A stretch of DNA of 64,000 bases. It comes from Macrostomum lignano. Its lineage: Eukaryota. The position numbers were made by a program, and so were the translations under genes. This document shows positions 24,463 to 59,027 of the stretch, one piece after another (within the stretch, counting starts at the first letter, position 1; every line of letters begins with the position of its first letter). Below the pieces are notes generated by a model, which had not been told where the DNA came from, made no database searches, and worked only from the letters and a program-made list of their open reading frames with translations. The stretch lies in contig NIVC01002634.1 in assembly GCA_002269645.1 (NCBI GenBank), positions 1 through 64,000 on the forward strand, read 5' to 3'.

Positions 24463-24466
<4 letters not shown>
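23000..24466 (+). CDS. E1 ORF1 (DUF4780-like retroelement ORF1), two apparent 1-nt frameshifts (~23265, ~24350)
   Basis: ORFs 23000-23611 and 23329-24360 join at a C-run. The central domain (PALVIQG..RAWIP..NPELP) aligns with E3 ORF1. The acidic C-terminus ending LLHNSP* parallels E3 LLSKSP*. Confidence 0.75.
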
Positions 24467-28210
<3,744 letters not shown>

Positions 28211-31680: not shown

Positions 31681-34513
31681 CTTCCTGTTCTCAGTCACAC
31701 TTCCTGTTCTCTGTCACTCCCTTCCTGTTCTCTGTCACTCCCTTCCTGTTCTCTTTCACTCCCTTCCTGTTCTCTGTCACTTTTTCCTGTTCTCTGTCAC
31801 TCTTTTCCTGTTCTCTGTCACTCTCTTCCTGTTCTTTGTCACTCCCTTCCTGTTCTCTGTCACTCTCTTCTTGTTCTCTGTCACTCTTCCTGTTCTCTGT
31901 CACTTTTTCCTGTTCTCTGTCACTCTTTTCCTGTTCTCTGTCACTCCCTTCCTGTTCTCTGTCACTCTCTTCCTGTTCTCTGTCACTCCCTTCCTTTTCT
32001 CTGTCACTCTCTTCATGTGCTCTGTCATTCTCTTCCTGTTCTCTGTCGCTCCCTTCCTGTTCTCTGTCACTCCCTTCCTGTTCTCACTCCCTTCCTGTTC
32101 TCTGTCACTCTCTGCCTGTTCGTTCTCTGTCACTCTTTTTCAGTTCTCTGTCACACTTCCTGTTCTCTGTCACTCTCTTCCTGTTGAATGTTACTTTCTT
32201 CCTGTTTAAAGACGGCCTTGTTTTCCTTTTTAGAATGGATTAGAAAACAGAAAGGAAGTGACAGAGAACAGGAAGAGAGTGACAAAAAACAGAAAGAGAG
32301 TGACAGACAACAGGAAGGGAGTGACAGAGAACAGGAAGAGAGTGACAGAGAACAGGAAGAGAGTGACAGAGAACAGGAAGGGAGTGACAGAGAACAGAAA
32401 GGGAGTGAAAACGTGTGTCACATCTGTCGCTAAGCAGAGATTGTCACACATGTGTCACAGTGGCAGCACTAATTTTCCTGTTTATTAACTAAGCAGACTT
32501 TTCAAAAGCAACAAAGTTGTTTTCTCTAACTAGCAGAGGTAGCCCAGCTGAGTGAGGCATTGATGGAATAAAATGGGATTTTTTGTGCCTTGCATTTGTC
32601 TGCCGAAATCCTGATTACTTTTAACGAAAGAAAAATTGTTTGGCTCTCTGCACCTGCACCTGAATAATTGCTGTTATGCTACTCCGCTTGGGATGCCTAC
32701 ACGATGGGGAGAAATCGTTGCTGCGCGTGGCGAAGGAAATAGCGACTGGTAGTTTTTGTGGAATTGTGCAACTCTGCTTCTGGTAGTTCTGAGGGGAATT
32801 GTGCAACTGTGCTTCTGGTAGTTCTGAAAGGAATTGTGCAGCTCTGCTTCTGATAGTACTGAGGAGTATTGTACACCTCTGCTTCTGGTAGTTCTGAGGG
32901 GAATGGTGCAACTCTGCTTCTGGTAGTTCTGAGGGGAATTGTGCAACTCTGCTTCTGGTAGTTCTGAGAGGAATTGTGCAACTTTGCTTCTGGTAGTTCT
33001 GAGGGGAATTGTGCAACTCTGCTTCTGGTAGTTCTGAGAGGAATTGTGCAACTTTGCTTCTGTTAGTTCTGAGGGGAATTGTGCAACTCTGCTTCTGGTA
33101 GTTCTGAGAGGAACTGAGCAACTCTGCTTCTGGTAGTTCTGAGGGGAATTGTGGAGCTGGGCTTCTGGTAGTTCTGAGGGGAATTGTGCAACTCTGCTTC
33201 TGGTAGTTCTGAAGAGTTCATTCCTCATTCTCTTCCTGTTCTCAGTCACACTTCCTGTTCTCTGTCACTCCCTTCCTGTTCTCTGTCACTCCCTTCCTGT
33301 TCTCTTTCACTCCCTTCCTGTTCTCTGTCACTTTTTCCTGTTCTCTGTCACTCTTTTCCTGTTCTCTGTCACTCTCTTCCTGTTCTTTGTCACTCCCTTC
33401 CTGTTCTCTGTCACTCTCTTCTTGTTCTCTGTCGCTCTTTCTGTTCTCTGTCACTTTTTCCTGTTCTCTGTCACTCTTTTCCTGTTCTCTGTCACTCCCT
33501 TCCTGTTCTCTGTCACTCTCTTCCTGTTCTCTGTCACTCCCTTCCTTTTCTCTGTCACTCTCTTCATGTGCTCTGTCATTCTCTTCCTGTTCTCTGTCGC
33601 TCCCTTCCTGTTCTCTGTCACTCCCTTCCTTTTCTCACTCCCTTTCTGTTCTCTGTCACTCTCTTCCTGTTCGTTCTCTGTCACTCTTTTTCAGTTCTCT
33701 GTCACACTTCCTGTTCTCTGTCACTCTCTTCCTGTTGAATGTTACTTTCTTCCTGTTTAAAGACGGCCTTGTTTTCTTTTTTAGAATGGATTAGAAAACA
33801 GAAAGGAAGTGACAGAGAACAGGAAGAGAGTGACAGAAAACAGAAATAGAGTGACAGAGAACAGAAAAAGAGTGACAGAGAACAGGAAGAGAGTGACAGA
33901 GAACAGAAAAGGAGCGACAGAGAACAGGAAGAGAGTGACAGAGAACAGGAAGGGAGTGACAGAGAACGGAAAGGGAGTGACAGAGAAAGGGAAGAGAGTG
34001 ACAGAGAACAGGAAGGGAGTGACAGAGAACAGGAAGAGAGTGACAGAGAACAGGAAGAGAGTGACAGAGAACAGGATGGGAGCGACAGAGAACAGGAGGG
34101 GAGTGACAGAGAACGGAAAGGAAGCGTCAGAGAACAGGAAAAGAGTGACAGAGAACAGGAAGAGAGTGACAGAGAACAGGAAGGGAGTGACAGAGAGCAG
34201 GAAGAGAATGACGGAGAATATGAAGAGAGTGACAGAGAACAGGGAGAGAGTGACAGAGAACAGAAAAAGAGTGACAGAGAACAGGAAGGGAGTGACAGAG
34301 AACAAGAAGAGAGTGACAGAGAACAGGAAGAGAGTGACAGAGAACAGGAAGAGAGTGACAGAGAACAGGAAGGGAGTGACAGAGAGCAGGAAGAGAATGA
34401 CGGAGAATATGAAGAGAGTGACAGAGAACAGGGAGAGAGTGACAGAGAACAGAAAGGGAGCGACAGAGAACAGGAAGGGAGTGACAGAGAACAGGAAGAG
34501 AGTGACAGAGATT

Positions 34514-37204: not shown

Positions 37205-39300
37205 CCACCTTAAGAAGCACAGCTGCACAATTCCCATCAGAACTACCAGAAGCACAGCTGCACAACTCCCCTCAGAACTACCAAAAGCACAGCTGCAAAA
37301 TTCCCATCAGAACTACCAGAAGCAGAGTTGCACAACTCCCCTCAGAACTACCAGAAGCAGAGTTGCACAATTTCCCTCAGAGCTACCAGAAGCAGAGTTG
37401 CACAATTTCCCTCAGAGCTACCAGAAGCAGAGTTGCACAATACTCCTCAGAACTACCAGAAGCAGAGTTGCACAATACTCCTCAGAACTACCAGAAGCAG
37501 AGTTGCAGAATTCCCCTCAGAAATATGAAAAGCAGAGTTGCACAATTCCCCTCAGAACTACCAGAAGCAGAGTTGCACAATTTTCCTCAGAACTACCAGA
37601 AGCAGAGTTGCACAATTCTCCTCAGAACTACCAGAAGCACAGCTGCACAATTCCCCTCAGAACTACCAGAAGCAGAGCTGCACAATTCCCCTCAGAACTA
37701 CCAGAAGCAGAGTTGCACAATTCTCCTCAGAAATACCAGAAGCAGAGTTGCACAATTCTCCTCAGAACTACCAGAAGCAGAGCTGCACAATTCCCCTCAG
37801 AACTACCAGAAGCACAGCTGCACAATTCCCCTCAGAACTACCAGAAGCAGAGCTGCACAATTCCCCTCAGAACTACCAGAAGCAGAATTGCACAATTCCC
37901 CTCAGAACTACCAGAAGCAGAATTGCACAATTCCCCTCAGAACTACCAGAAGCAGAATTGCACAATTCCCCTCAGAACTACCAGAAGCAGAGTTGCACAA
38001 TTCCCCTCAGAACTACCAGAAGCACAGTTGCACAATTCCCCTCAGAACTACCAGAAGCAGAGTTGCACAATTCCACAAAAACTACCAGTCGCTATTTTCC
38101 TTCGCCACGCGCAGCAACGATTTCTCCCCATTATGTAGGCATCCCAAGCGGAGTAGCATAACAGCAATTATCGTATTCAGTGCAATTATTCAGGTGCAGG
38201 TGCGGAGAGCCAAACAATTTTTCTTTTGTCAAAAGCAATCAGGATTTCGGCAGACAAATGCAAGGCACAAAAAATCCCATTTTATTCCATCAATGCCTCA
38301 CTCAGCTGGGCTACCTCTGCTAGTTAGAGAAAATAACTTTGTTGCTTTTGCAAAGTCTGCTTAGTTAATAAACAGGAAATTTAGTGCTGCCACTGTGACA
38401 CATGTGTGACAATCTCTGCTTAGCGACAGATGTGACACACGTTTTCACTCCCTTTCTGTTCTCTGTCACTCCCTTCCTGTTCTCTGTCACTCTCTTCCTG
38501 TTCTCTGTCACTCCCTTTCTGTTCTCTGTCACTCTCCCTGTTCTCTGTCACTCCCTTCCTGTTCTCTGTCACTCTCTTCCTGTTCTCTGTCACTCCCTTC
38601 CTGTTCTCTGTCACTCTCTTCCTGTTCTCTGTCGCTCCCTTTCTGTTCTCTGTCACTCTCCCTGTTCTCTGTCACTCCCTTCCTGTTCTCCGTCATTCCC
38701 TTCCTGTTCTCTGTCACTCTCTTCCTGTTCTCTGTCACTCCCTTCCTGTTCTCTGTCACTCCCTTCCTGTTCTCTGTCACTCTCTTCCTGTTCTCTGTCA
38801 CTCCCTTCCTGTTCTCTGTCACTCTCTTCATGTTCTCTGTCATTCTCTTCCTGTTCTCTGTCACTCCCTTCCTGTTCTCTGTCGCTCCCTTCCTGTTCTC
38901 TGTCACTCCCTTCCTGTTCTCTGTCGCTCCCTTCCTGTTCTCTGTCACTCTCTTCCTGTTCTCCGTCATTCCCTTCCTGTTCTCTGTCACTCTCTTCCTG
39001 TTCTCTGTCACTCCCTTCCTGTTCTCTGTCACTCCCTTCCTGTTCTCTGTCACTCTCTTCCTGTTCTCTGTCACTCCCTTCCTGTTCTCTGTCACTCTCT
39101 TCATGTTCTCTGTCATTCTCTTCCTGTTCTCTGTCACTCCCTTCCTGTTCTCTGTCGCTCCCTTCCTGTTCTCTGTCACTCCCTTCCTGTTCTCTGTCGC
39201 TCCCTTCCTGTTCTCTGTCACTCCCTTCCTGTTCTCTGTCACTTCCTTCCTGTTCTCTGTCACTCTCTTCCTGTTCTCTGTCACTCTCTTCCTATTCTCT
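37205..39300. repeat. 35-bp array, U module and 21-bp array upstream of Lin28 copy 2
   Basis: Same order and orientation as 15720-18225. Confidence 0.95.
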
Positions 39301-39521
39301 GACTGTTTTATCCATGCTATCCCATCATGGCTGTTATATTCTATCCACCCCTTATCAATTAGTGGCATGGTTTAAGAAAATAAAAGGCGAAAGTCGCAAT
39401 AGCGAAGAAAGCAATGTTTTTCATCCAGAAACGTCTCAAAATTGGGACATTGCACCATTCAAACTGAGCTAAAGCTAATTATTCATTTTTATTGACTTAT
39501 TCAATTAGTTCATTCACTATA

Positions 39522-40306: not shown

Positions 40307-43012
40307 GCCAACAGCTGCGGATACGTCAGCTGCGGCCGCCCTCTGCGTGGCAAGTTCCTCACCTGTGCGAGATGTAACAGCCGCTTCCATCTGCAGAAGG
40401 ACTGCTCCGGGTTGAGTCGCTGGGCCGCGAACAAGGCCGCGGACGCCCAGGAATGGCACTGCGCCAATTGCGTGATCAGACCCACCACCCAGACAGACTT
40501 GTCGTCCTCTGACCAATCGTCCACCTCTACCTGCCAGCCCACGGAAGAGCACGCCACCCGCAGGCAAGCCCTGCTCAACCGTATCCGGCAAGAGAAACCT
40601 AAATGCAATCATTGTCGGAAACCGATGCGCGTCAGCTCCACCATCGCCTGCTGCAATGCCTGTGAAGGCTTCTTCCACAACGCCTGCACGCAAGCCTCGC
40701 GCGACCAGATCAAAAAAGAAATCAGTCGCGGGCTTTGGAGATGCGGTCATTGCACTGAAGCCGCCTGCCTCCAAGGCCCGCCCTCCCCTGAGGACCCTGA
40801 CCCCACTCCTGCTGGGGGGAGCCACCCGGAAGAGGGGTGGGACTGCAAGAAACCCGAGCTCAAAATCATTCAATGGAACGCGGACGGGATCAGCAACAAA
40901 ATGGGGGAGCTTGAGGACCTCGCATCTCGGCTTCAGGCCGACGTTATTGCGGTTCAAGAGTCGAAGCTCACCTCCTTCAACAAAACCCCCCGCATCCCGG
41001 GTTTCAGCACATTCGCAAGGACCGTAGAACCGCCCGCTGCGACCCGAACGTAAAAGGCGGCGGCCTGCTCTTCTTTATCCGGCAAGGCATCCCGTTCAAT
41101 AAACTCCAAGGATGGTCTGGAGGAACCACCGAAGGCTGTAGAATATCGATCAGCACCTCGGCCAGACAAAAACTTGTCATCGCCAACATTTACCGCCCCC
41201 CCCATCCGGCGCGTGGAAGGCGAAGATCACCGTGAGCACCCCAGTGTCGATTCCTGGCTCAGATGCTTTCACAGGGAAATCCTGCTTGGTGACCTAGCAG
41301 GATGGGTTGGTGATCGGAGCCGAGCTCGGTGAGCGGTTTTCCGCTCAGAACACACCACACACACTGCCTGGGGCAGCGATCCCAATCAAGGACCTGAAGG
41401 TGCAGCACAAGCTCAGTGCCTGGTCGACCGGTGCAACTCCGTGGACTACCGCATCCTGAACTCAGGGGAACACACCTGCGTTGACAGGCGCACCGGACGG
41501 ACTAGTGCCCCCGATCTCACCATCGCTAGCCAATCTGTCGCCGACCTCTGTAAATGGCAACCGCTCACCGAGCTCGGCTCCGATCACCAACCCATCCTGG
41601 TGACCGTCCGGGAATCCCGCGAAACCTCGAAAATCAATGACGGCTCCATCAAGAAACAGATTGCCAGGCTCTGCTCGGGCATGCTTAAAGCAGTCAAAGC
41701 TGCTATCCCGCTCAAAAAAGTCTCTGCCAAAAACAAGCCATACTGGGATGAAGAACTTACCGAAATTCGCGACACTCGGAACCGGCTTAGGGAATCTGGC
41801 GCCCATCCTGGCGAGTGGCTCGAAAAAAGTCACGAACTGTCCAAACTCTGTGCCATTAAGAAAGCCGAATTCTGGAAGGAGTATATCAAGAAAATGTCCG
41901 ACTCTGCCGACCCAAAACAAGTCTGGAGGACCAATAAGTGCCTCAGCAACGGCAAGCAACAAGCTCCTCCCAACGAATCTCTCATTGTTGACGGTCGAGA
42001 ACTGCGCACCGACAAGAAGAAGGCCAACGCCTTTGGCCGCTATTACCAAAACATCAGCACTCTGAAACACTCGGCGGCAGACCGCAAGGTCAAAGTGGCC
42101 ACATCCCGTCGCCTGGCCCAATACTCCACCGACGACGACCTTTACTGCCGTGACTTCACCCCTGGTGAGCTGGAACGGGCCATTGGCAAACTTGACCCCA
42201 GCAAAAAATGCGGTCCCGACGAAATCGAAGCTGCCTTCTTCATCCACCAGCCGGACTCTTGGATGACGGCCTGGCTGGCCGTCTTCAATCGTTGCTGGCG
42301 TACCGGACACTGCCCTGGAGTCTGGAAAAAGGCCGTTATCGTCCCTCTGCCAAAAGACGGAAAGGACCCCAAAGACCGCGGTAGTTACAGGCCTGTCAGC
42401 CTCACCTCCGTCTGCGGGAAGACCCTCGAACGGCTTATCCTCGATCGCCTCTATCGCTGGCTCGAGCTTCACAACATCATTCAGCCCTGGCAGGCCGGTT
42501 TTCAACGCAGTCGCGGCTGTGAAGAGCAAATCGCCCGCCTCGTTCAGTCTATTCAAGATGGCTGGGAGAAACGCCCGCACCTGAAAACCGTGGCCGTCAT
42601 CATCGACTGCTCTCGCGCTTTCGACCGTGTTTGGCGCGCTCGCCTTATTGGTCGCATGATGGATGAAGGCGTCCCTGCCTGTATGGTGCGTTGGTTCACC
42701 AGCTTTCTAGAAGGCAGGCAGATCGCTGTGCGGATCGGCTCCTCGCTTGGGAAATGGCGCAGACTGAGGGAAGGCGTCCCCCAGGGCGCCGTCAGCTCGC
42801 CTGCCCTTTTCCTCCTCTATGTTAACAAGTGGTCCGGCCACACCATGCCCCTCGTCGACTACAGTGGCTATGCAGACGACCTTGCCCTCTGGAGCACGGG
42901 CCGGAACCTCCCGGAAATCCAGGCTCGCCTCCAATCCGCCCTGCAACTTGTCGAGGAATGGGCCGCTCATCTGCGCATCGACATCAACCCCTCAAAAACT
43001 GAGGCATGCCTC

Positions 43013-43368
43013 AGGGGGCCGTAGCCCAGCGGTAGCGCAGCTGCTCTGGTGTGCCAGCGACCCAGGCTCGATTCCAAGTGCAGTCACATTAATTTGGGAC
43101 TGAATTGGAATCTCGGCTTGGCTCTGCTCGTGCAATTAACGGCCTTGAGAGCCAACCGCCCAAGGCGCAGTGAAGTGTACATGACTAAATATAAAGTTAG
43201 GGCCGCAGTACACTCCTGTGTGAGTGTGTGCCTGCGTACGTATCCGCGCGCTTGTATGCCTGCTCAGGGGAGTCGGCGGAATGGGCAGTAATGCCTCTCG
43301 CCGGTTGTGTGCCCATGTCGCTTAAAGTGTGCCAGGGTGCACACAACCCCCCTGCCTCTAAAAAAAAA
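43013..43368 (+). mobile_element. tRNA-derived SINE (~356 bp) inserted in the E4 RT
   Basis: 12-bp TSD GAGGCATGCCTC (43001-43012 / 43369-43380). A box TAGCCCAGCGG, B box GGCTCGATTCC, poly(A) tail. The E4 RT frame resumes after the TSD. Confidence 0.92.
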
Positions 43369-44974
43369 GAGGCATGCCTCTTCTCTCGTGACAGATCTGA
43401 CCGTCAACGAAACCCCAGCCTTACCCTCCGGGGCCAACAGATTCTTTTCAAGCAGGAGATTAAGTTTCTCGGAATCTGGATTGACCAAGGTCTGCTATTC
43501 GAAAAGCAAACTGACTCCGTCAGGGAGAAAATGTTTCGCCGAGCTGCCATTCTCCGTGCCCTAGCCCACCGTGAATGGGGCTGGGATCGCAAGCTACTGC
43601 TGCGAGTCTACCGGGCTCTTGTGGAATCCGTCGTGTGCCACGCCGCCGCGGCTTGGACGCCCTGGCTATCTGCGACCCGTCTCAACGCCATCGACCGTGC
43701 CCAGCGCGAGGCCCTCCGGGTTGTCACTGGTCTCCCTCGCTCGACACCGGTTGAGGCCATCTACTTTGAGTCGGGAATCCTTCCCATCAGCCTCGAAGCC
43801 CGCCGAAGATCGCTACTTGCGGTTGAGAAAGCGCTCCGCAGACCCCCCCCCCCACCCCCGACGACCCCTTCTGGCAGCTTTGCGAGCGCCGCCAGGACAC
43901 CCGGCTTTCTGCCAACCGTGGCCTCCGCGAACAAGCTAGACGAATCACCGATGAGCTCCTTGGCGGACATTGCCTTGCTAACAGCCACATCCGGCTCCCA
44001 CCCTGGAACTCTTTGGCCGACGCCGGAGTGCGCATGTTCACTAAGCTGCTGTTCGAGCCACTTGAAACCGACGCCGTCCAGGCGGTCCAAGCCACCACGA
44101 CCGCGCGCTGCCCGAACGCCGCCACTTACTTCACCGACGGATCCGTCTCGGGTGGCGTTAAAAACGGAGGCGCGGCCTGGATTCTCTTGAGCCAGGACGG
44201 CTCTATCAGCCGGAGCGGGCGAGTGGCCGCGGGCCGCTGGTGCAGCTCCTTTGAGGCTGAACTCATCGCCATCTTCCAGGCGCTAAGCGACATCACTGCC
44301 AACCCCCCGAAAGAGGCTGCCATTCTCACCGACAGCCAGAGCGCCATCGCGGTTCTAAAATCCGATCGTCCATCCACTAACCCGCTCGTGGAGAGCGTTA
44401 AGAATGCCTTTACACCGCCGCCCGTCGTTCGAAGATCATCCTGCAGTGGGTGCCCGGGCACGCCGGAATCCCCGGAAACGAACTTGTGGATGCCGAGGCC
44501 AAACTAGCGGCCACGCTGCCTCAGGAACATGTCGGCATCACCCTGGATTCGGCGAGGGCCCGCATCCGAGGGGCTGTTAATTACTCGCCCAACATGACAG
44601 GCCACCTGTTTGAGGTCTATGGCCAAAAGATTACGATGCATGAGAGCCCGCACAGACAACAGGTCCTGGTCTCGCAGGTCAGCCCCAGCAGCTAATCGCC
44701 GGGCACTGTCCTGCATCGACCTACTACCGCAACCGCATTAGCATTGAGGTCGGGGGCAACTGCCGTCTCTGCGCGGAAGAGGTTGATCAGTACCACCTCC
44801 TCAACTGCCCGGCCCTGGACGTCCAACGCCGTACTCACTGCATTACCGAAATGTGTCAACTCGCTCGCTCAGACGCAGTGGCGCTTCTCCTAGGGGCCAT
44901 CGGTTGGTGTCCCCTTTAGGAGAGGCTCACCGCATTCAACAACAACAAAAGCAACAACAACAACAACAAAATAC

Positions 44975-46447
44975 GCGACCCAGCATGCACAGTCACAGTT
45001 AGAGCAGGGCACGTCAGATGGCGCGCCGCAGAGCCTGGGAGCGAATAAAGTCCGCTCCGTTGGCAGTGTCGGGCGCCCCAGCGTCGCACAGCAGGCAGTC
45101 CACGTATCGGCGGGTTCGGGCCTGACCCCGCCTTCTTCGCCGGCATCGTGAACGCGCCCGCGTCGCCGCTGCCCGCTAGCTTTGCGCTCCCACTGGACAC
45201 GCCGCTCCCAGCTGAGGAGGATATCTGCACCAGACCAGTCACCACGCAGGACGTTGTGCTGTACGCGCGGAAAACATCAGGCGGCAAGGCGCTCGGCCCC
45301 GACGAAGTCCCGGTCGAAGCGCTGCGGCTCCGCTGTGTGGCCTCCCAGGTCACAGGCGTCATGAACCGCGTGCCCGCCGGCGCTCCTGCGCCTACCGAGT
45401 GGACCGTCGCGCACATCGTGCCGATCCCGATGAAGGCAGGGACAACGCGGAAAGAAGACCACCGCGGGATCTCGCTGATGTCCTGCACCGCGAAGCTCTT
45501 CAACCGGCTGCTGCTCGATCGTCTGCAGTCGGTGCTGGACCCGTACCTGCGGTACGAGCAGAACGGATTCCGGCCGCAACGCGGTACAGTGACACAGATC
45601 CTCGCACTCCGCCGTGTCATCGAGGAGGCGCGCATCCGCCAGTCTACGCTGATCATTGTCTTCGTTGACTTTCGAAAGGCGTTTGACTCAGTGTTGAGAG
45701 CCGCGCTTCCCTTTGTCCTTCGAGCCTAGCGGGTACCCCAGCAGCTAATCGACGCTGTCATGGTGCTATATTGCGATACTCGAGCTGCTGTGGTGACGGG
45801 GGACGGCCTGTCTGACCTGTTCGATACTTCATCAGGAGTTCTGCACGGCGACACGCTAGCTCCGTTCCTCTTCGTGCTGCTGCTGGACTGGGTGCTTCGG
45901 ACCTCACTCCCCACGGCTAATGACGGCTTCCTGCTGCGCAGACGCATCGATCGCCGCCACGGCGGAAAGCGCCTAGGCGTGCTTGGCTACGCCGACGACC
46001 TCGCCCTCCTGTCCTCGTCCGTTGAAGGCGCCCAGCGCCAGATCGACAGGCTGGTCGAGGTGGCATCGAGCGTCGGTCTGATCGTCAACACGCTGAAGAC
46101 CGAGGTGCTGACTGTGCCGGCCGACATCCCAGCGGACCTGACGTGCCGCGGCGCAGAAGGGCAGACGACCAGGCTTGCATGCTGCAAGCGGTTCACCTAC
46201 CTCGGCGGTCTGGTGCCCCACGTGGAAGAGGACCTCCGGCGGCGCAGAGGACTTGCCTGGGCGGCCTTTCGTTCGATCCGAGCCGTCCTCCAGTCCGAAG
46301 CGCTGCCCGACCGCCAGAGGGCTCGGCTGTGGCAGGCGGTGGTCGAAACCGTCCTGCTCTACAACGCCGAGACGTGGACGCTGACGGCTACGCTAGAGCG
46401 GTAGCTGGACTCGGCGCACTCAGGGCTGCTCCGAGAGCTGACGAGAG
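44975..46447 (+). mobile_element. Degenerate RTE/RTEX-like LINE, 5' part (RT domain)
   Basis: YEQNGFRPQRGT, FVDFRKAFDSV, GVLHGDTLAPFLF, YADDL; in-frame TAGs at ~45728 and ~46402. Confidence 0.8.
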
Positions 46448-46448
46448 T

Positions 46449-46696
46449 GCACGCGAAGGCGTATTCAGCATGCCAGTGAAGTATGAGACAGACCAGGCCT
46501 TTGGGCTAAGGTCTGCGATGCTTCACGCCTGCCCCTATCTTTAGCAGGTCAAGGCTGGTGGGAGGTCTGCACCCTCTATTTGCCTCTGGCAGCCGCAGAC
46601 CCCCCCCCCACGCTGTCTCGCAAGTCGACCCAGGGTACTCGTCCCCGCGTGTGTTCAAGGCAGACCCTAGGGCTGCTGGACAGACTGGGCTCCGGC
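46449..46696 (+). ncRNA. Predicted HDV-like ribozyme at the 5' end of E3
   Basis: P1 GCACGCG/CGCGTGT (G1.U), P2 CCCA/TGGG plus extension, P3 GGG/CCC, L3 TACTCGT, P1.1 AC/GT, P4 46655-46680, J4/2 CAGAC. Confidence 0.78.
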
Positions 46697-46967
46697 GCTG
46701 GCGACCCTATCCAGTGGCTTCGGCCGAATTTGGGTATGCGGGTCTGGCTCGCCGACCTGCAGGCCGTGGTACTGCTCAACGTACTCTCTAATGCCTAAGG
46801 TGTTGACCGTGCCGATGGGCTGGAAGGCCGGGGAGTAGTCCGGTCGCAAGCGGTCCCCCTCCTGGTGTCGGGCCAGCCTTGAGGGTTCGATTGGCCTACT
46901 GCCCGGTCAGGTGGAGCGGCCGGGTGGGTACCGCGCCCCTTTGAGGGTAGCCCACCAACCTTTTATC

Positions 46968-48476
46968 ATGGCCTTCGAGCCGACTATGGATAAACAAGCT
47001 ATTTCTAGGGACGGGGACCCTTCTAAACCCCAACCTCAGTCCGAAGGACCGGCCGGCCCTGCTGGCAGATCCCAACCGACTGATTCAACTGTGGCAAAGG
47101 AAGGACCGGCTGGCTCTGCTGGCAGATCCGACCAGAGCTACCAAACTCAAAATACCCAAAGACCTGCCAGCTCCGCTGGTGGATCTAAGGGAACCGCGAG
47201 CTCTGAGCCTAAAGGACCGGCCAAATCTGGCAGATCCGATGAAGCTCAGCGGGCTCGGCTTGAGCGCAAACGCGCTAAACAACGCGCCAAAAGGCAGGCC
47301 AAGAAGGGAGCTGCGGGGGCCAAAGCGGCGGCGTCCACCATGGATGCTGAAGCGACTGGAGTCCCAAGGCAACCAGGCGGGCCGGCCGGTGGAAGCTCCA
47401 GTAGTTCAGCGGCGGCGCTCCCTGGAGCTGCTGCCGCGGCTGCTGAGGCCGAAACCACGGCGCAACAAATGGCCACTGCCAACAAGGAGGTTCCTTCGGG
47501 AGCTACCTTTGCGGCGAAGGCCAAGGCCAAAATCCCGGGAGTGATCATCCAAGGTCGCGACCAGGACTGGACCACTGATCAGCTTCAAAAAGTGTGGAGT
47601 GCTGTTGACTCCTATCTGATTGAGCTGACTGTCGAGGAGGGAATCTCCATCGGCATTGAGCGGATGGTGCTGCGAAGCACATTCGTTCTTATTGCTCCTA
47701 GCAGCGAGGAGGACGCTCGGCGGCTGCTCCAGCGGCTGCCGACGGTCTCCTTGGATGCTGACCTTGGCGGAGCTCTTTTTCTTCGCGAGGGCCAGCGTCC
47801 AAAGACGATACCCTACGTGGTTTTCGTCCCTGCTAAGAGCACCGCAGCTGGACCACCTGACGTTATCCGCCGGGTCCTACTGCGTCTGAACCCCGACCTC
47901 CCTGCTAGTGGACTGGTGTATCACCGCCGAGTCCGCAGGGGGGAGACGGGCAACTCAATTGTCCTCGGCCTTTCCAGCACTTGGGCGAGTCGGTACCCTA
48001 ATGGATCCTCTTTCCAGCTGGGTGCCCTCAAGCTCAAGATGCGCCGAGGAAAGTCTGCCAAAGGGAAGGCTACTGCCAACCCCGGCATCTCCGGCAAGAG
48101 CGGGGCGCAGTCTAAGGCCCAAGGAAAGGCGCAAGCCGATCCCAAAGCCAAAGCTGTGTCTCGCCCCTCTGCTAGCAGCAGTTCGGCAACCGCGGTAACG
48201 GCTCCGGCCAAGCCCCGGGAACCAAATCTGCCAGTCGGAGAAGGAGTTGAGGACGAGGCCGGGTCTTCGGAATCCGAGCTCTCCTCGGCCACCCTGGTGG
48301 GGTCTGAAGGTAAAGATGCAGATGAGGAAGCTTCCTCCATCCTGTCGTCGGAGCCTGAGGACTCTGCTGGGGGGGCCGGTGGGGGTGAGGAGGCCATGGA
48401 CGTCGACCAACTCCCATCTCCCAGTCAAGCCCCAGCGGCCTGGGACGAGGACGATCTGTTGTCCAAGTCTCCTTGA
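46968..48476 (+). CDS. E3 ORF1, intact (DUF4780-like central domain, low-complexity termini)
   Basis: Open frame 46911-48476 with first ATG at 46968; PGVIIQG..WTTDQLQKVW..VVFVPA..LNPDLP aligns with E1 ORF1. Confidence 0.8.
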   Translation: MAFEPTMDKQAISRDGDPSKPQPQSEGPAGPAGRSQPTDSTVAKEGPAGSAGRSDQSYQTQNTQRPASSAGGSKGTASSEPKGPAKSGRSDEAQRARLERKRAKQRAKRQAKKGAAGAKAAASTMDAEATGVPRQPGGPAGGSSSSSAAALPGAAAAAAEAETTAQQMATANKEVPSGATFAAKAKAKIPGVIIQGRDQDWTTDQLQKVWSAVDSYLIELTVEEGISIGIERMVLRSTFVLIAPSSEEDARRLLQRLPTVSLDADLGGALFLREGQRPKTIPYVVFVPAKSTAAGPPDVIRRVLLRLNPDLPASGLVYHRRVRRGETGNSIVLGLSSTWASRYPNGSSFQLGALKLKMRRGKSAKGKATANPGISGKSGAQSKAQGKAQADPKAKAVSRPSASSSSATAVTAPAKPREPNLPVGEGVEDEAGSSESELSSATLVGSEGKDADEEASSILSSEPEDSAGGAGGGEEAMDVDQLPSPSQAPAAWDEDDLLSKSP

Positions 48477-48515
48477 TGGCCCTGGGCTCTAGCCAGACAT
48501 TGCATTTAATACAGT

Positions 48516-51500
48516 ATGACTAAGCTCCACGCTGCCAAAGGAGCGACATTCTGTCTGCAAATAAATCTACAGCATTGCGTATCTGCGTCAGTAAATCTGA
48601 TGAAGATTGCTGAGCTGTACAGGCCAGGCCTCATCCTGATCCAGGAACCCTGGATGCGCAACGGTAAGTTGCCCAACATTCCCTCTGGCTACTCTGATTT
48701 TTATGTGTGTGGCCCGGGGAACAGCCGCCCTAGAGCGGCTATCCTCGCTGCTAGCCATCTCCAGGCTTGGCTGAGGACTGATCTCTCTGATGGAGACCTT
48801 TGCGTCATCCAATCTAATCATTTCTCTCCGCGTACGTGTCTTGTTGCCTCGGTTTATATCCCAGGCGACAGAGACCCTGCTCCCGAGAGTTTACTGCGCC
48901 TTGCGCAGTACTGCCAGTCCCAGAACGCTGAGCTGTGCTTAGGGGGCGACCTCAACGCGCACCACAAGCACTGGGGCAGCAAAGATACCAACACTAGAGG
49001 AGAGGAGCTTCTGGCCCTCATCTCTAACACAAACCTCATGCTCTGCAACCGCGGCAGCACTCCTACCTTTAATAATGGCAGATGGACCGAGGTCCTCGAC
49101 GCCACACTCGTTACCCCAAGACTCTTTGACAGAGTTGAGGAGTGGAGAGTCTGGTCTGAGGAGCCCTCCCTGTCTGACCACTGCTTTATCGCCTTTAACA
49201 TCGCGGACACTAAAACCCAGTCTCCGATCACTTGGAGGCGCAATATCCGCAACACTGATTGGGCGGCCTACAAGGCTGCCCTTGATCTGCACCTGCAGGA
49301 ACTCACGGACTTACGTCCGATTGAGACCTGCGAGGATGTGGATCATATGGCTGAGACGCTGACAGGTTGCATTATTGCAGCCTACGAAGCGGCTTGTCCT
49401 GCTCGCGCCTACAAAGGCAAGACCTCGGCGCCGTGGTGGAACCCGGAGCTGGGGAAACTCAGGCGGAAGGCCAAAAGCCTTCATCGCCGTGCCATGAAGA
49501 CCGGAAACCCGGAGGACATGGAGCTTTTCCGGCAAGCCTCCCGCAATTTCAAATCTGAAGTGCGCAAGGCCAAGGAATGTAAGTGGCGCCAATTCTGCAA
49601 TGAATTGGATCAAGACAGACCTACTTCTAGGCTTGTCAAGGCCCTTACAATGGACAAAATGTCCAAATTAGCCATGATCAAAAAAGATGATGGCTCTCTT
49701 ACTAAAGACCCTGAAGAAGTGCTTCAGCATATGCTTAGCACATTCTTCCCGAGGGTACCTACTGCTAGACCTGAGCCCAACCATTGGATGGATGGAGCCA
49801 CCCTAGCGGCGGGCATTGTCACTGAAGACCTAATCGCACGTGCGGTCAGAACCTTCAAACCCTTCAAATCTCCTGGACCTGATGGTATCTACCCTGTTCT
49901 CCTTCGTGAAGCAGCCAAGATACCCTCGTTCCTGAGACTCACCCGCAATCTTATGCGGGCCTCTATCCAGCTGGGATACGTTCCCAAATGCTGGACTGAA
50001 GCTCGAGTAGTCTTTATTCCCAAACCTGGGAAGGGTGACTACCAAAGCGTCAAGGCCTTCCGGCCTATTAGCTTAACGTCAGCAATGCTTAAGCTCACTG
50101 AGAGGCTTATTCTCTGGCGGCTGCTCTCCTGCGAGCTGACAGCGATGCCCCTCAGCAATAATCAGCACGCCTTCCGTACCGGGAGGTCGACTGACAGCGC
50201 CCTGCATGCGATTGTCGAGAAGATTGAACGGGCGGTACTGGGTGACGGTTACGCCCTGGCTCTCTTTCTTGACATTGTTGGCGCCTTCGACAACGTTATC
50301 TTTGAAGCGTTTCAGAGGGCCCTTCAAAATCGCAAAGCTCATGCTACCCTCATACGGTGGATCATGTACATGATCTCCAACCGTACGGTCACTGCCCAAC
50401 TTCTTGGGAAACTGCCTCCACCAGAGTCTGTAAGGGTGGACCCCAAGGCGGAGTCCTCACCCCGACGCTCTGGAACCTGGTCATGGACGCTCTTCTGAGT
50501 GACTCCCGACCCGACCCCGTCTTCAAAGTCGGGTATGCTGATGACGTCACGGCCATTGTGGCAGGACCGTCTCCCAGCACGCTCAGGGATCTGATGCAGA
50601 GCTTTATCCGCAAAGCAGAATCCTGGGCCAATGACAATGGTCTGGAACTCTCTGAGCCCAAAACCGTTGCCATTATGTTTACCAGCAGACTACGCTGGAA
50701 CATACGTCCTCTGCAGCTCTACGGCAGAGATATTGCCTTCGCGCACCAGACCAGATGTCTCGGGGTCACACTTGACCACCGGCTCAACTGGTCCTTCCAC
50801 GTGAAAGCAAAAGCCAAGCGTGCCTCAGCCATCCTGGCCCAGCTCCGACGAGCACTTGGCACTTCTTGGGGTCTATCCCCAAAGCGGCTTTGGTGGATCT
50901 ATACTTCCGTAGTTAGACCTGCCATTACGTACGCCTCTGTCGTCTGAGTTAGCGCTACCCAGGTCAAAAGCCATGCAGACCTGCTTAACACGATCCAAGG
51001 CAGAGCGTGTAGGCTCATCTGCAACGCCACCAGGTCCACGCCCTTTGCTGGCATGGGGGCCTTCCTTAATCTACCGCCTCTTGACCTCTTCGTCAGGGGT
51101 GAGGCGGCTAGAACGATGCGGCGTCTAATTGATGCCGGCTTCAAATTCATTTACATGAGAGCACCTGCTAAGCGGAACCTTGTCCCGCATAGCGACCTGT
51201 GCCTCAACTTTCTCAACGAGTGTCAGGCCAATCGCGTCTTCACCGATCGCATTGCCTCAACGCTCAACCTGAGACAGCGCTACTCCGTAGCTATCGACTC
51301 GCGCGATAACATCAATGACCAATGTAACCTTGGTGAGCTTCATTGCTACACCGACGGTTCTAAGCAGTCAGCCAACACCGGCTTTGGTGTTGGAATCTTT
51401 CTGAACGGGAGGTCATCGCTACCCACGCTCAATACACTGGGGTCAACTCCAGTGTTTTCCAAAATGAAGTTCTGGCCATCAGCTCCTGCACTGCAGAGCT

Positions 51501-52254
51501 TCTCGCCACTGGCGTTACTGGTAAGAACATCATTTTCCATTCGGACAGCCAAGCTGCCTTGCACGCCATCAGTGGCTGCAGCACCAACTCTGCTACAGTC
51601 CTCGACTGTATCAAACTCCTCAACGTGTTGGGTTCCACCAACAAAATTACCCTTAAGTGGGTTCCGGGGCATGTGGGGATCCGAGGAAATGAGTTGGCTG
51701 ACACCCTTGCAAAAGTTGGTGCCTCCGGCTCCTCTCTCGGCCCCGAACCCCTTGTCCCGATTCCTGGCTGTGTCATCGACTCGCGCATCAAAGCGTGGAT
51801 CAGGACCCAGCACCGCTCGACTTGGGCGAACTGCACTACCTGCAGGCAATCCAGAGGCGCTGTCCCTCAGCCCTCTCACCAGCTCCGGAAGCTCCTCTTG
51901 CGCCTCTCGCGCAGAGACATCCGGGCTGCCACCATGACCCTCTCTGGTCACGGCTGCTTCTCCAGGCACCAGTACCTGCAGGGCAACGCCACCAACGCCA
52001 CCTGTAGTTTCTGCAACTCAGGTGACGAAACCGCTGAGCATTTCGTCAGCATCTGTCCCGCCTTCACGCGGGCCAGACTCACTTACCTCGGGCCACACAC
52101 ATCTATTACTGAAGCGTGCAAACCCGAAAACTTTAATCAGCTCATGCGCTACCTTCGGGCCACCCGCAGGGCTGAACTCTCCTTTCCAGAGAGCACTATA
52201 GCTGCTGGCGACACTGGGGGACCTCCCTGGGCGGCGCCAACCCTCCGTCCATAG
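48516..52254 (+). CDS. E3 ORF2 (APE-RT-RNase H-CCHC), disrupted by frameshifts (~50405, ~51410) and a TGA (50945-50947)
   Basis: LQINLQHC, GDLNAHH, SDHC, YADDV, YTDGS, WVPGHVG, CSFC..EHFVSIC. Confidence 0.9.
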
Positions 52255-52350
52255 CGACGCGTCGGCCGTTCAGGGACTAGCGGAATGGGCGCCCGCGCCT
52301 TCCCGCTGTGTCCCCTCCGGGACAGCCCTGCAGCTAAGTCAAGTAAGTCA

Positions 52351-52530
52351 AGCTGACGAGAGCGTCGGGACCGAGGCCCTGTATGATCGGGCCAAGCTGC
52401 AGCGCCCGTCTATCATCCTGCGCCGGCGGTGACTTCAACTGGCGGGTTACGTGATCCGGGCCTAGGGCTACTGCCCCAACCTGTTCAGGACGTCCTGCTG
52501 CTCACCTTGCAGGGTCCGTTCAGGTTGCTA
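52351..52530 (+). mobile_element. 3' continuation of the RTE-like LINE after E3
   Basis: ADESVGTEALYDRAKLQRPSIILRRR*LQLAG continues the RT C-terminal region interrupted at 46447. Confidence 0.7.
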
Positions 52531-54284: not shown

Positions 54285-54570
54285 GCTAAAAAAAGCCCTG
54301 GCTGTCCTGGTCCAGATCAGGCGCGCCGTGGGCATCACCTGGGGGCTCACCCCCAGGAAGCTGTGGTGGATTTACACTGCCATAATCCGCCCCTCGATCA
54401 GTTACGCCAGCCTCGTGTGGGCCAGCGGTCTGAGCGTCAAGAGCAGCCTCGACGCTCTCTACAAAATCCAGGGCAGAGCCTGCCGCATGACTATGGGCGC
54501 TCCACCCTCTACTCCTTTTGAAGGCATGAATTCCTTCCTCTGTGCCCCTCCTCTGGATATTTACATCAAA
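54285..54570 (+). mobile_element. E2-type LOA fragment, 5' piece
   Basis: Near-identical to E2 ([12 protein letters not shown]...PPLDIYIK); the frame continues at 56559. Confidence 0.88.
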
Positions 54571-56558
54571 TGATGGGTTTCGACCTTCGGGCTCCTTGTT
54601 AGGGGAGCCGTCGGGCCTCAGGCTCAGAAATAAATCAATTAGAGACCTGGCCCCCACTCCTGTCAGATGGTCAGCCCCATGGTAGCTTGATCGTGTGGCG
54701 AGCAGTCTAGGTCCTATAGCTAAGAGAGGGACAGCGAGAGACGAGCAGGGAGAATTTTGAAAGTAGAAATTAGCTAATCCGTAGATCAACTAACTTGCTG
54801 CCACCAGCCCGTGCGCCCTGGCTCACCACACCGGGACTCTCGAAATCGGGCTTCCGACTAGAAGGGGCTTTGCACTTACCTGCCAACTAGTGTCTTTTTG
54901 CTGTCAATCTCGAAGTCATAGCCGATGATAAGGGACACTGCTGGGACTAGATCGCATTGGCCATGCAGGTACAGAGGGGACTTGTGCATGGGATTCTTGC
55001 GGGGGCGAGACTATGGGGTAGCTACATGTACTATTACATTGCTAAATACGAAGATATGTACTTTTGGCCTTCAACGCGCCAACTAGCCTCTCATAGCGCT
55101 GATGATAGACTAACTCGAACTTCAGAGACCACATGATTCATTTACCCGAGCCGCTTGGCTACCCTAGAGTGCACAAAGTACATCTCTGGCGCCGATTCTG
55201 CACTTCTGGCAGTTTTGCTCACTAATTTGATAGATTGGTCGACTGAGAACTGCCTTGCCATTGGTCCACTGTGACCGGCGCCTACTAGCTTAGCTACTCA
55301 TCTGAGCCATCGGCGAACAAAGAAATAAAACCGATAAAAATAACTGTTAGATCTAACCTTCTCCTTAGTTCACTTCACACTTCAGATTTAATTGGAGTCT
55401 TAGACTACTAGCAGTATTATTAAATGATTTCTGCCTCAGCAACAGCACTACTGAACAAAATGAGCAAAAGTGTGCGCCTAATTCAGCTACTGCAACAGGG
55501 GACAGATAAGGGATCACCCAATCAAGCAAGTCTAGGTAGCCTCTCACCCAAACAATCAGAAACTCAACAGCCGGAGACCAGGCAATCCACAGTGACCGAA
55601 TCGGCTTGATGCTTCGCAGCTGTAGACTCGGGATGATGCTGTCACGATCTTCGCTGATAGCTAGCAGGTGATGATCTTTGCTTGATGTTCGCTGCTGTCG
55701 ACCGGGGGACTCGTCCTTGATGATGATGGGGGAAGTCGCAATCCGGGGATCAAGAAACGACGGTCGTGCTCCGGGAACCAGAAGTTGCGCGCTGGGCCCG
55801 AGCCAAAGTTGAGTCCGAGCGGGCCAAAAACTCCGGTTTAAATAGCCGCCAACTGGACCGCAGTTTGTTATAATGGAACACGTCGATTCTGATTGGCTGA
55901 GCCGTTTTGTTAAAATGAGCGCCGAATTTTCTGATTGGCTAAGCTTGTTGCTACCCAGAATCACGTGACCGAGAGATCCTATCAGTTCCCACAGGGTCGT
56001 AAAAAGATGACAGGTGCGGCCATAAATCACTCAAAATCGCAACAAAATGATTTATGACTTTTCGCGTAGGATTGACAGAAATTAACGAAAAAATATACAT
56101 TAGAAAGCTCTTATTAAATAGAAAGTGAAGATAATGAAGAGAAATCGCTAATCGCTAATCCCAAGGTACTTTTAGGGGTAAAACGCATAGCTGTCAAAGC
56201 TGTCACACGCTTGAGTGAACACGAACAATAGGCTCTGACCTCATAAATCTTGATGGCCTGTCAAAATGATGAGAAAAAAAAGCTACCGCCCGCATCCTCT
56301 CAGACCATCTGGCGCCCACCTCAACACTGAGTGAGGCGCAGGTGGCTGTCAGACCAGCTTCGCAAGCGATGATTTATGACCCAAAAAGCTGCGCCTATGT
56401 TATTATGACTACTAGTATGGCCAGACATTATATCTAGTATAGATTCTATGAAAATTCGCAGAAAAAGGATAAAAATGCCCATTGCCCACTGTTAGTAGGC
56501 AAGTAAGTTCAGAGCCCATGTGCTAGCGCGGGATTTGGGAAAAAGTGCGTCCTCATCA
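54571..56558. mobile_element. ~2-kb insertion with TGATG...CATCA ends and 4-bp TSD (CAAA); candidate large solo LTR
   Basis: Splits an E2-type reading frame precisely (ATCAAA | GTAGAGACGGCG). Non-coding interior with two ATTGG/CCAAT boxes and a TATTTAAA-like motif on -. Confidence 0.6.
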
Positions 56559-57372
56559 CAAAGTAGAGACGGCGAAGAGCACTTGGCGTCTTCTGGATGC
56601 TGGGGTGGCCTTCAAGAAAGTGCGGGCCTTTAAGAAGCGGTCGCTTATCACGCACTCTGACCTCTGCCTCAAGACTCTCGAGGAGTGTGGCGGGCTCAAC
56701 ATCCTTACGGACTCGATCCCAGCCACCCTTCTCCTCCCAGCCGATCCCAGACAAAGGTATATGGTCACTATTCAGCCTCGACACGAGGCAAGTGACAGCT
56801 GGAGCGATTCTGAAGTCCACTGTTACACTGACGGCTCTATGAGGCATGGTCTTTTAGGCTTCGGAGCTTGCGTCTTCTTCAAGGGAGAAGTGGTGTGGAG
56901 CTACTCCCAGCACACTGGGCTCAACTGCAGTGTTTTTCAGAGCGAGGTGCTTGCCATCAGCTCCTGCGCGGCAGAGCTGCGCCAAAGGCAGCTTCTTTCA
57001 GGGCCAAGTACCCGAGGAGCGGTGCCCCTTCTGCCGCTCAGGCAGTGAAAACGCCGAGCACTTTATATCTGTCACTGCCCGGTTTTCACCAGGGCCAGGC
57101 TTACTCACCTCGGGCCAAACCCCGTTCCCTCCGACGTTTGCAGGCCCGAGAGCATCCCGCTGCTTGCCTGGTACCTCAGGGACACGGGACGAGCTTATTT
57201 CTTCCCCACCGCCGGTGAGAAGGACCGCGCTGCAGGCGAGACCGACGGGTCCCCTGAGCGACGTCACTTCGATGGAAGTCATTGGTCGCCAGGGGCTAGC
57301 GGAATCGCGGTCTCCTCCGCCTCCTCGCTGCATCCGCCGGATGCCCCCTGCAGCTAAATCAAGTTAAGTCAA
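56559..57372 (+). mobile_element. E2-type LOA fragment, 3' piece with internal deletion and tail
   Basis: RLLDAGVAFKKVRAF, YTDGSM, 3'UTR matching E2, tail TAAATCAAGTTAAGTCAA. Confidence 0.88.
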
Positions 57373-57374
57373 CC

Positions 57375-57650
57375 TCCCTGGCGATCAATTCACTTCTTGA
57401 AATCGGTCGCGCAGCGCCCGGATGTCGCTAGTGTACATGTATGTGTACGTGTAGAACTCAGAACTCTGCCGATTGATTCTCCAGCCACTGGTTGGCAAGG
57501 TTCCTAGAGACTTAGCTCTTCGTTAGACTCGAAATGGGGCCCACGGAGCAGCCGCTTATTTGCATGCAAAAGTTGACAGAGCAGCTTACATGTAATTATA
57601 AAGTTGGAGGGTGCCAGGTCTGGTGAATTGGCCAGGGCCGCGTCGCCATG
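57375..57650 (-). mobile_element. Degenerate mariner-type transposase C-terminal relic
   Basis: SPDLAPSNF (YSPDLAP motif), LRGPHFESNEEL and IRALRDRFQEV resemble a mariner C-terminus. Confidence 0.55.
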
Positions 57651-57879
57651 GATTTTATGGTGGGGGGACAAAGCCGGGAATTCTACATGTACATGTACAT
57701 GACTGAATTCGTACACGTACATTTTTTTTCAGAATCGGTGTTCTCATCGCTCATTTTGGCGCCGCAGGCATTTAGCAACAGTAAAAGGTATCAAAGCAAC
57801 CGGTGTAACCAAAAGTGTCCGAACTACATGTATCTACTAGCAGCATCAAAGCGTGGCATAGCTGCTGAGGCTGGACCTG

Positions 57880-59027
57880 GAGCTGCGGTCTCAGGTTCTC
57901 TGAGTCTAAAACCGTGGCTATTATGTTCACCAGTCGCCGAAACTGGAGGATCGAACCGCTCTCCCTCTATGGCAAACCCGTTGCCATGGAAAAACAAACC
58001 AGATGTCTGGGCATCACCCTCTCGACCACAGGTTGAACTGGACTCCACACGTCCAAACCAAAGCCCGCAAAGCTCTCGCGATTCTCGCGCAGATCTGCAG
58101 AGCTTTTGGCGCTACCTGGGGCCTCACACCCCGTCGCCTCTGGTGGATTTACTCTGTCATCGTGAAACCGGCCATCTCCTTCGCCGGCTTCATTTGGAAC
58201 AGTTCCCTAGAGGTGAAAGGGGTTCTCGATGCTCTTAACAGGGTGCAAGGCCGCGCTTGTCGAACTATCATGAGCACGGATCCCTCTACACCCTGTGCTG
58301 GTATGAACTCCTTCCTGGACATCCCCCTTAACCTCTTTGTCAGAGGGCAGGCAAAGAAGACCAACCCGACCCGCCGTCTGCTTGACGCGGGTGTCCCCAT
58401 CCAGAAGCAGTTCGCCTTCAAAAAGCAGAACCTCTGGCCGCACGAGACCTGGAAGCAGTAGGAAGCATGCTGACCCTCTCGGACGGAATCCCGCCCACGC
58501 TTTGCCCTCCGCTGAAATTCAAAACCAGCATTCCACCACGCCATGAGGCTAGGGACAACCGGAAACCCCGTGAAATCAACTGCTTCACTGACGGGTCCCA
58601 AATCAACTCCGCCTCTGGCTACGGCTACTGCTTCGTGTCCATTCTGGAGGGAGAACTGTTGTGGCCTTCTTCCCAGCACACCGGCACCTGCTCCACCGAT
58701 TTCCAGAACGAAGTTCTCGCCATCAGCTCCTGCGCCATCAGCGCGTCTGGGGGAAGGAGATGATCTTCCACTCGGTCAAGCGGCGATCCACGCCCTTGAG
58801 CGCACACCATCACCTGCTCTCGTACAGTCCTCGACTGCATCAGGCAGCTCAACCGCTTAGTCGCATCTAACAAGGTGTCCCTATCCCCGGGCACTCGGGC
58901 CACCCTGGCAACGAGCTGGCCCATCGCCTGACCAAGGCTGGCTCGACAGGTTCCTTTACTGGTCCCCTTGCCCGTGGCCCCCTCCCCCAGATGCACGGAG
59001 CCCCCTGCAGCTAAGTCTAAGTAAAAA
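57880..59027 (+). mobile_element. Degenerate E1-type LOA 3' fragment
   Basis: Aligns with E1 26585-28310 with indels and a large deletion; ends CCCCTGCAGCTAAGTCTAAG. Confidence 0.88.

Follow-up and report, generated by a model that had tools for sequence, protein, structure and literature searches.

A probable HDV-like ribozyme at the 5′ end of a LINE family in Macrostomum lignano

Positions 46449 to 46696 of a 64,000-nt stretch of Macrostomum lignano DNA (contig NIVC01002634.1, positions 1 to 64,000; hereafter the window) probably encode, with a likelihood that we put at roughly 0.8 from the sequence, an HDV-like nested double-pseudoknot ribozyme that would process the 5′ end of a LINE, here called E3. 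The fold starts at the first base of the element, and it is conserved and covaries among members of the family. Self-cleavage and a role for it in the life cycle of the element are suggested by analogy with R2, L1Tc, Baggins and RTE (PMC3774820, PMC6765202, PMC3185411). HDV-like ribozymes at LINE 5′ ends are already well known, having been established in these same four kinds of element with J1/2 regions of tens to hundreds of nucleotides (PMC3774820, PMC6765202, PMC4908430); the copy described here is itself well supported.

E3 is a full-length non-LTR insertion that begins at G46449. The initial annotation of this DNA had placed the start at this G, after a single T, and both the target-site duplication and the point at which similarity to a second copy, E1, sets in agree with that placement. 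The elements and their parts in the window are as follows.

46449 to 52352, forward strand: E3
46438 to 46447, with the 3′ copy at 52353 to 52362, forward strand: target-site duplication of E3, CTGACGAGAG, 10 bp, perfect
46448, forward strand: additional T that follows the duplication and precedes G1; it would be nucleotide −1 relative to the predicted cut
46968 to 48476, forward strand: ORF1 of E3, counted from the first in-frame ATG
48516 to 52209, forward strand: ORF2 of E3, encoding AP endonuclease, reverse transcriptase and RNase H, in three frames with changes near 50408 and 51400
52330 to 52352, forward strand: 3′ end of E3 with its (TAAGTCAAG)n tail
22397 to 28312, forward strand: E1
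22385 to 22396 and 28313 to 28324, forward strand: target-site duplication of E1, CAACTCTGCTTC, 12 bp, which abuts G22397 directly
about 31678 to 28777, reverse strand: E2, a third family copy

The empty-site sequence continues as GAGAG/CGTC at 52362/52363, and T46448 is probably an untemplated junction base. In blastn alignments E1 and E3 become similar precisely from G22397/G46449 onward, and the 5′ flanks of the two copies are unrelated, E1 lying inside a 35-nt satellite and E3 inside an older LINE; in both of these independent insertions the element begins where the cut is predicted. The placement known from LINE 5′-end ribozymes was found, at the extreme 5′ end, upstream of the ORFs and behind unrelated flanks, in elements with duplications and a (TAAGTCAAG)n tail. 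ORF1 of E3 shares 86–98% identity with TE-derived parts of UniRef entries from Macrostomum lignano, which by itself assigns the DNA to this flatworm or a very close relative. E2 is 5′-truncated at about residue 307 of ORF2, is 63% identical in ORF2 to a further family member, L001 (below), and is without the ribozyme; it lies tail to tail with E1, with a 35-nt satellite array between them (28312–28756).

The host of E3 is an older, unrelated non-LTR element in the same orientation, 25–30% identical to ORF2 of L001; E3 interrupts its reverse transcriptase ORF, which occupies 45208–46447 and resumes at 52363 to run to about 52530, and a second old reverse transcriptase fragment occupies 41441–44190. 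Short rearranged pieces of the 3′ half of the family ORF2, with 47–70% amino-acid identity and none with a 5′ end, are scattered over 54289–58988. The 3′ tails of the family consist of (TAAGTCAAG)n after a conserved CCCUGCAGC, without poly(A) (52330–52352, 28287–28312 and, in L001, about 5940–5957). The window has a eukaryotic look, its non-LTR retrotransposons being GC-rich and accompanied by long satellite arrays with units of 21, 35, 45 and 60 nt, among them a higher-order satellite with blocks of about 1.5 kb, each made of a 35-nt array, a 21-nt array and an inverted 21-nt unit (19336–22396, 28312–28756 and 31681–34511), into which both E1 and E2 were inserted; the 35-nt and 21-nt units recur in the opposite orientation at 15724–18998 and 37213–39301. 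Unrelated tandem arrays with units of 22, 23, 20, 45, 27, 4, 28 and 60 nt occur within positions 1–14339 and 63249–64000, including about 300 copies of (TGTC)n at 10763–11951.

The assignment of an HDV-like double pseudoknot held up when it was checked base by base, and every helix and motif that had been listed for it was found within 46449–46696. Its parts in E3, and the copy in E1 used for comparison, are given below in RNA letters.

46449 to 46455, forward strand: P1 5′ strand, GCACGCG; G46449 opens the element and would be the 5′-terminal base of the cleaved RNA
46456 to 46623, forward strand: J1/2 insertion domain, 168 nt, containing small hairpins and a C-run according to RNAalifold and individual folds
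46476 to 46526, forward strand: long conserved J1/2 hairpin, 51 nt (22424 to 22474 in E1; 28 to 78 in L001)
46624 to 46632, forward strand: P2 5′ strand, consisting of the extension GUCG (46624 to 46627), an unpaired A46628 and CCCA (46629 to 46632)
46633 to 46635, forward strand: P3 5′ strand, GGG; G46633 could alternatively pair with C46685 as a fifth P2 pair
46636 to 46642, forward strand: L3, UACUCGU, of which positions 2 and 3 form P1.1
46643 to 46645, forward strand: P3 3′ strand, CCC
46646 to 46652, forward strand: P1 3′ strand, CGCGUGU, giving a 7-bp P1 closed by G46449·U46652
46653 to 46654, forward strand: P1.1 3′ nucleotides, GU, forming the pairs C46638-G46653 and A46637-U46654
46655 to 46658, forward strand: J1.1/4, UCAA, in which CAA is invariant in E3, E1 and L001
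46659 to 46677, forward strand: P4 hairpin with the loop CUAG and a bulged A46664
46681 to 46685, forward strand: J4/2, CAGA(C); comparison with HDV-like ribozymes (PMC3774820) makes C46681 the candidate catalytic cytosine
46686 to 46696, forward strand: P2 3′ strand, consisting of UGGG (46686 to 46689), the loop CUC and the extension CGGC (46693 to 46696)
22397 to 22609, forward strand: the ribozyme of E1, with P1 formed by 22397 to 22402 and 22561 to 22566, L3 at 22551 to 22557 and the predicted catalytic C at 22594

Both P1 helices were as first described, GCACGCG/CGCGTGT in the DNA of E3 and GCATGC/GCATGT in that of E1, the latter being 6 bp long and followed by an A7×C mismatch. The compensatory change reported for P1 was recovered at position 4, where the U-A of E1 is C46452-G46649 in E3; the two bases are 197 nt apart, somewhat farther than the "about 190" given originally. 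L3 of E3 (TACTCGT in DNA) allows the two Watson-Crick pairs of P1.1 that had been proposed, and in E1, with L3 UUCACGC, P1.1 consists of one C-G pair and a U×U, again as noted before. The J4/2 readings, CAGA(C) in E3 and CUGA (CTGA in DNA) in E1, likewise agree; the last C of the former had been bracketed because G46633 cannot serve both as the fifth pair of P2 and as the first pair of P3. P4 was rightly said to be retained, but the claim that it carries a different loop did not stand, since E1 and E3 share the loop CUAG; the two P4 hairpins differ instead by the additional bulged A46664 and by a change of U·G to C-G in the stem. The G-run has three G in E3 (46633–46635) and four in E1, with G46633 common to P2 and P3, and in effect E3 is shifted by one nucleotide relative to E1, with a P2 of 4 bp and a P1 of 7 bp as against 5 and 6.

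The ribozymes span 213–248 nt, a large part of which is taken up by J1/2 (168 nt in E3, 135 nt in E1 and 157 nt in L001). A segment of 35 nt in J1/2 (46569–46603) is present in E3 and L001 and is missing from E1, probably by a derived deletion in E1, judging from this distribution. In E3 it leads into a run of ten C (46600–46609); the homopolymer lengths at 46600–46609 and at the GGG of 46633–46635 may be distorted by errors of long-read assembly. Forced folds also gave a possible helix closing J1/2, of 8 bp in L001 and 6 bp in E1, where one pair is compensated, and of only 3 bp in E3.

A single compensatory pair between E1 and E3 is weak evidence by itself, and it is a third sequence, L001, that makes the case. 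L001 is a Logan contig of 6492 nt from run ERR14788467 that was reached through a search with ORF2. The element in it is full-length, and its ORF2 shares 76% identity with that of E1 and 56% with that of E3. Since the fold had been defined on E1 and E3, L001 provides an independent test of it. The first base of the contig is the G homologous to G46449. P1 of L001 is GCCUGC/GCAGGC, with C-G in place of A-U at position 3 and G1-C in place of G1·U as the closing pair, and P2 is CUCAG(A)/(U)CUGAG, with U-A in place of C-G at position 2. Both P1.1 pairs covary, being U-A and C-G in L001 and C-G and A-U in E3. P3 is unchanged, L3 (UCUCCGU) retains the U...CG pattern, and J4/2 is CUGC(U), in which the C is present and the final A is absent. 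At the site of P4 an unrelated 11-bp GC-rich hairpin is found, a replacement that fits expectation because P4 is a peripheral helix. At position 4 of P1, L001 has U-A, as does E1, so the difference at this position separates lineages rather than reflecting private decay of one copy; CpG decay as the sole cause of the U-A/C-G difference was ruled out by the same observation.

The two ends of L001 are not alike. On the 3′ side the contig continues for about 540 nt beyond the tail, into unrelated sequence that holds an ORF on the reverse strand, yet on the 5′ side it opens exactly at the G that follows the predicted cut. Were ERR14788467 an RNA-seq run, such a difference between the ends would be direct evidence that the 5′ end is processed; with a DNA run, the start may merely mark a break in the assembly graph.

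Pairs were tabulated for each sequence separately; MAFFT misplaced P4 and the P2 3′ strand of L001 and shifted E3 by one register relative to E1. All 20 pairs form in E3 and in L001 and 19 of 20 in E1, as against 5–11 of 20 when the 3′ partners were slid by 1–3 nt. For P1, P2, P3 and P1.1, 56 of 57 cells (19 homologous pairs in three sequences) are paired, with 18 of the 19 pairs kept throughout. Five of the 19, namely positions 3 and 4 of P1, position 2 of P2 and both pairs of P1.1, have changed on both sides and still pair, and two more have gone from G·U to G-C or C-G. When partners were shuffled, a mean of 0.68 double-sided pairs was obtained and none of 20,000 shuffles reached five, a comparison of three sequences that ignores their relatedness; with the seven variable pairs alone, 13 of 20,000 shuffles attained the observed pairing. 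For a sample of three sequences this covariation is strong, but it is below the grade expected of R-scape. HDV-like ribozymes have a conserved G in L3 with a U partner, a catalytic C in J4/2 and, ahead of P2, an A that is constrained (PMC3774820). Here, L3 reads U-N-N-N-C-G-N in E3, E1 and L001, with U1, C5 and G6 invariant, and a C lies in J4/2 4–5 nt before P2 in all three. The pair closed by G1, which is also the element boundary, is G1·U in E3 and E1 and G1-C in L001.

Conservation is concentrated in the ribozyme, as had been claimed from the divergence of the ORF proteins. When E3 is compared with E1, identity is 84% over the core, taken from CUCGCAAG through the last base of P2, and 85% over the long J1/2 hairpin, but falls to about 64% in ORF2 DNA and about 38% in what is left of J1/2; elsewhere in the 5′ UTR there is only one match, of 29 nt, and blastn found none between the two copies in ORF1 DNA. 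Compared with L001, the hairpin is 73–75% identical and is the best-kept block of the 5′ UTR, above the ribozyme core. RNAalifold showed double-sided changes that keep pairing at 3 of its 20 pairs. Its apex reads AGACCAGGCC-NNN-GGGCUAAGGUCU, and no match to it was found in Rfam.

That the best-conserved block is this hairpin and not the catalytic core would also be expected if G1 were the start of transcription from an internal promoter and the structure served protein binding, translation or RNA stability, with cleavage absent or irrelevant. Such a promoter would explain the shared G1 end equally well, E1 lies in a satellite array where transcription from upstream is not obvious, and L1Tc is reported to have its promoter and its ribozyme in one and the same 5′ stretch (PMC3383444). 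A promoter acting at the DNA level, however, leaves unexplained both the compensation between bases 190–200 nt apart and the covariation of P1.1, and the HDV hallmarks, the U..CG of L3 and the C of J4/2, are present. We regard this explanation as unlikely, and note that promoter and ribozyme may coexist in the same 5′ bases here, by analogy with L1Tc.

The ORFs of E1 and E3 each contain at least two changes of reading frame, ORF2 being read in three frames in either copy, and differences seen in a single copy, such as the U×U of E1, may therefore be decay or assembly error. The initial annotation expected the ribozyme of E3 to cleave faster than that of E1, its P1.1 being complete, a prediction that looks at a single helix. 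Against this weigh the shorter P2 of E3, with four free pairs as against five in E1, and its weaker closing helix, so that the order of the two rates is not readable from sequence; in large HDV-like ribozymes the rate can shift by close to three orders of magnitude through a helix in J1/2 (PMC4908430). The frame changes would also suit the view that these copies are dead, or that an HDV-shaped pseudoknot has been kept as a structural or protein-binding RNA after the loss of catalysis. The U×U in P1.1 and the A7×C mismatch of E1, the J4/2 of L001 without its last A and the shortened P2 of E3 point the same way, and the R2 protein is known to bind a pseudoknot within the 5′ ribozyme region (PMC6765202). 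On the other hand, the candidate catalytic C, the U and CG of L3 and the G1 closing pair have been kept across a divergence of about 40% in ORF2 protein, the perfect duplications suggest recent insertion, and indel errors in long reads could account for the frame changes. Either form of this explanation, dead copies or a family that has lost catalysis, is judged improbable.

A permissive HDV descriptor gave seven matches on both strands of 128 kb, two of which start at nucleotide 1 of E1 and E3, and its sole match in L001 also starts at nucleotide 1; the other five sites in the 128 kb make the motif by itself a weak criterion, and looser descriptors match about once per kb. The first loose descriptor missed E3, since it required a 5-bp P2 separate from P3, and this exposed the shared G46633. 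A rough estimate with forced folds gave −101 versus −103, −94 versus −92 and −139 versus −131 kcal/mol for the pseudoknotted and the nested minimum-energy folds, respectively, which would put the former level with or ahead of the latter. P1 and P2 were not recovered in the nested minimum-energy folds, and z-scores were modest (−1.65 and −2.67).

No match was obtained when the whole window was scanned against Rfam at gathering score, and at E≤10 no HDV-type family, including HDV ribozyme, drz-Agam-1, drz-Agam-2-2 and HDV-F-prausnitzii, matched 46000–47200, 22380–22640 or L001. Since there is no match at gathering score, the E3 ribozyme falls outside every curated Rfam HDV-type family; the models of these families allow neither a J1/2 insert of 135–168 nt nor pseudoknots. 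The descriptor matches elsewhere and the silence of Rfam are what would be seen if GC-rich sequence with a long permitted J1/2 had been threaded into an HDV-like scheme by chance, an explanation that is barely credible when 3 of 3 family 5′ ends match from nucleotide 1, none of the 20,000 partner shuffles equals the five compensated pairs and the pairing collapses in the slid controls.

Further copies were sought by several routes. Within the window no other copy with a 5′ end was found by blastn, tblastn or nhmmer. Protein searches with ORF1 returned only chimeric M. lignano UniRef models, which come without DNA, and the search with ORF2 returned one close full-length contig, L001, together with a 57%-identical match without a 5′ UTR and a 47%-identical match that is 5′-truncated. 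ORF2 found nothing in collections of viral and prokaryotic genomes. More than 120 metagenome matches to a conserved 17-mer, GGGCTAAGGTCTNCGAT, were all discarded as chance by blastn and nhmmer. More distant relatives (L003, L005, L126, L127 and L128; ORF2 30–39% identical) showed no HDV motif in 5′ UTRs whose true 5′ ends are not fixed, even to a descriptor that elsewhere matches about once per kb, and the HDV-like feature may be confined to the family of E1, E3 and L001.

If the 5′ end of E3 is indeed an HDV-like ribozyme, its action can be pictured from the known systems. E3 would be transcribed either from its own promoter or within a longer read-through transcript, the element lying inside an older LINE of the same orientation. 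P1, P1.1, P2, P3 and P4 would fold once the 3′ strand of P2, which ends at 46696, has been made. C46681 and a Mg2+ held by the U/G pair of L3 would then catalyze a reaction in which the 2′-OH of nucleotide −1 attacks the phosphate preceding G46449. The upstream RNA would be released, and the RNA of the element would begin with a 5′-OH G1 and retain the whole ribozyme as its 5′ UTR. Target-primed reverse transcription would produce copies that start at G1, each full-length daughter carrying the ribozyme. Our guess, again from other large HDV-like ribozymes, is that the 168-nt J1/2 domain brings P1 and P2 together, binds a protein of the element, or does both.

The closest parallel in position is L1TcRz, the ribozyme of L1Tc/NARTc in Trypanosoma cruzi, which is also HDV-like and starts at nucleotide +1 of a LINE encoding AP endonuclease, reverse transcriptase and RNase H. 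Like E3 and E1, L1Tc is not site-specific and makes duplications of about 12 bp, and the proposed task of its ribozyme is to free the RNA of the element when it is made as part of longer co-transcripts (PMC6765202, PMC3185411). L1TcRz differs in lying within the first 77 nt, where it is also a promoter, while the ribozymes of E1 and E3 extend over 213–248 nt with a J1/2 of 135–168 nt; there is no sequence similarity between L1Tc and the E3 family, the hosts belong to different phyla, and the E3 family has two ORFs. The 5′ ribozymes of R2 elements in arthropods and other animals share with E3 the double pseudoknot, the G/U of L3, the C of J4/2 and compensation in P1 (PMC3774820). Their P4 is variable or absent, and their J1/2 ranges from 23 to more than 700 nt, part of which is sometimes required for activity (PMC3774820). 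R2, however, has a single ORF and a restriction-like endonuclease, inserts only into 28S rDNA, is co-transcribed by Pol I and is often cut upstream of the junction, whereas E1 and E3 encode an AP endonuclease, sit within a satellite and within another LINE, respectively, and have P1 wholly inside the element.

In the LINE-associated drz-Agam-2 type, a structured J1/2 (P1.2) joins P1 and P2 and makes cleavage faster by nearly three orders of magnitude (PMC4908430). Unlike drz-Agam-2, the E3 family has several hairpins in J1/2, and among its members only E1 and L001 show a clear closing helix. Ribozymes are also associated with Baggins and RTE elements, often without a promoter of their own (PMC6765202). 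Nearest in host is the Perere-3 LINE of Schistosoma mansoni, another flatworm element with an AP endonuclease, whose 5′ self-cleaving ribozyme defines a transposition intermediate (PMC8501958); Perere-3 belongs to a different element family, and its ribozyme is a twister variant rather than HDV-like. Twister variants were the only flatworm LINE ribozymes found in a literature search (PMC8501958), and the search turned up no paper combining Macrostomum with HDV-like ribozymes.

A further proposal, which we advance only tentatively and consider rather doubtful, is that the J1/2 hairpin is an obligatory second module, either an activator of folding or a site for an element protein that couples 5′ processing to RNP assembly, and that the family is the first of HDV-like LINE ribozymes in flatworms. 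If true, the 5′ end would be a composite unit of ribozyme and recognition, and, together with Perere-3, it would mean that flatworm LINEs independently recruited two ribozyme classes for one job.

The E3 family leaves the picture of the nature and function of HDV-like ribozymes unchanged. It does offer natural variants for studying the tuning of HDV-like ribozymes by their peripheral domains, with a P1 of 6 or 7 bp, a P2 of 4 to 6 bp, a P1.1 that is complete or not, a P4 that has been swapped and a J1/2 with or without the 35-nt segment, and it adds a flatworm lineage to the LINEs that would use HDV-like ribozymes. Knowing where the family begins helps to annotate TEs and to interpret 5′ RNA ends in the Macrostomum genome. 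For an abundant LINE family in Macrostomum, a model for regeneration and the germline, it supplies a precise 5′ end and a likely transposition intermediate.
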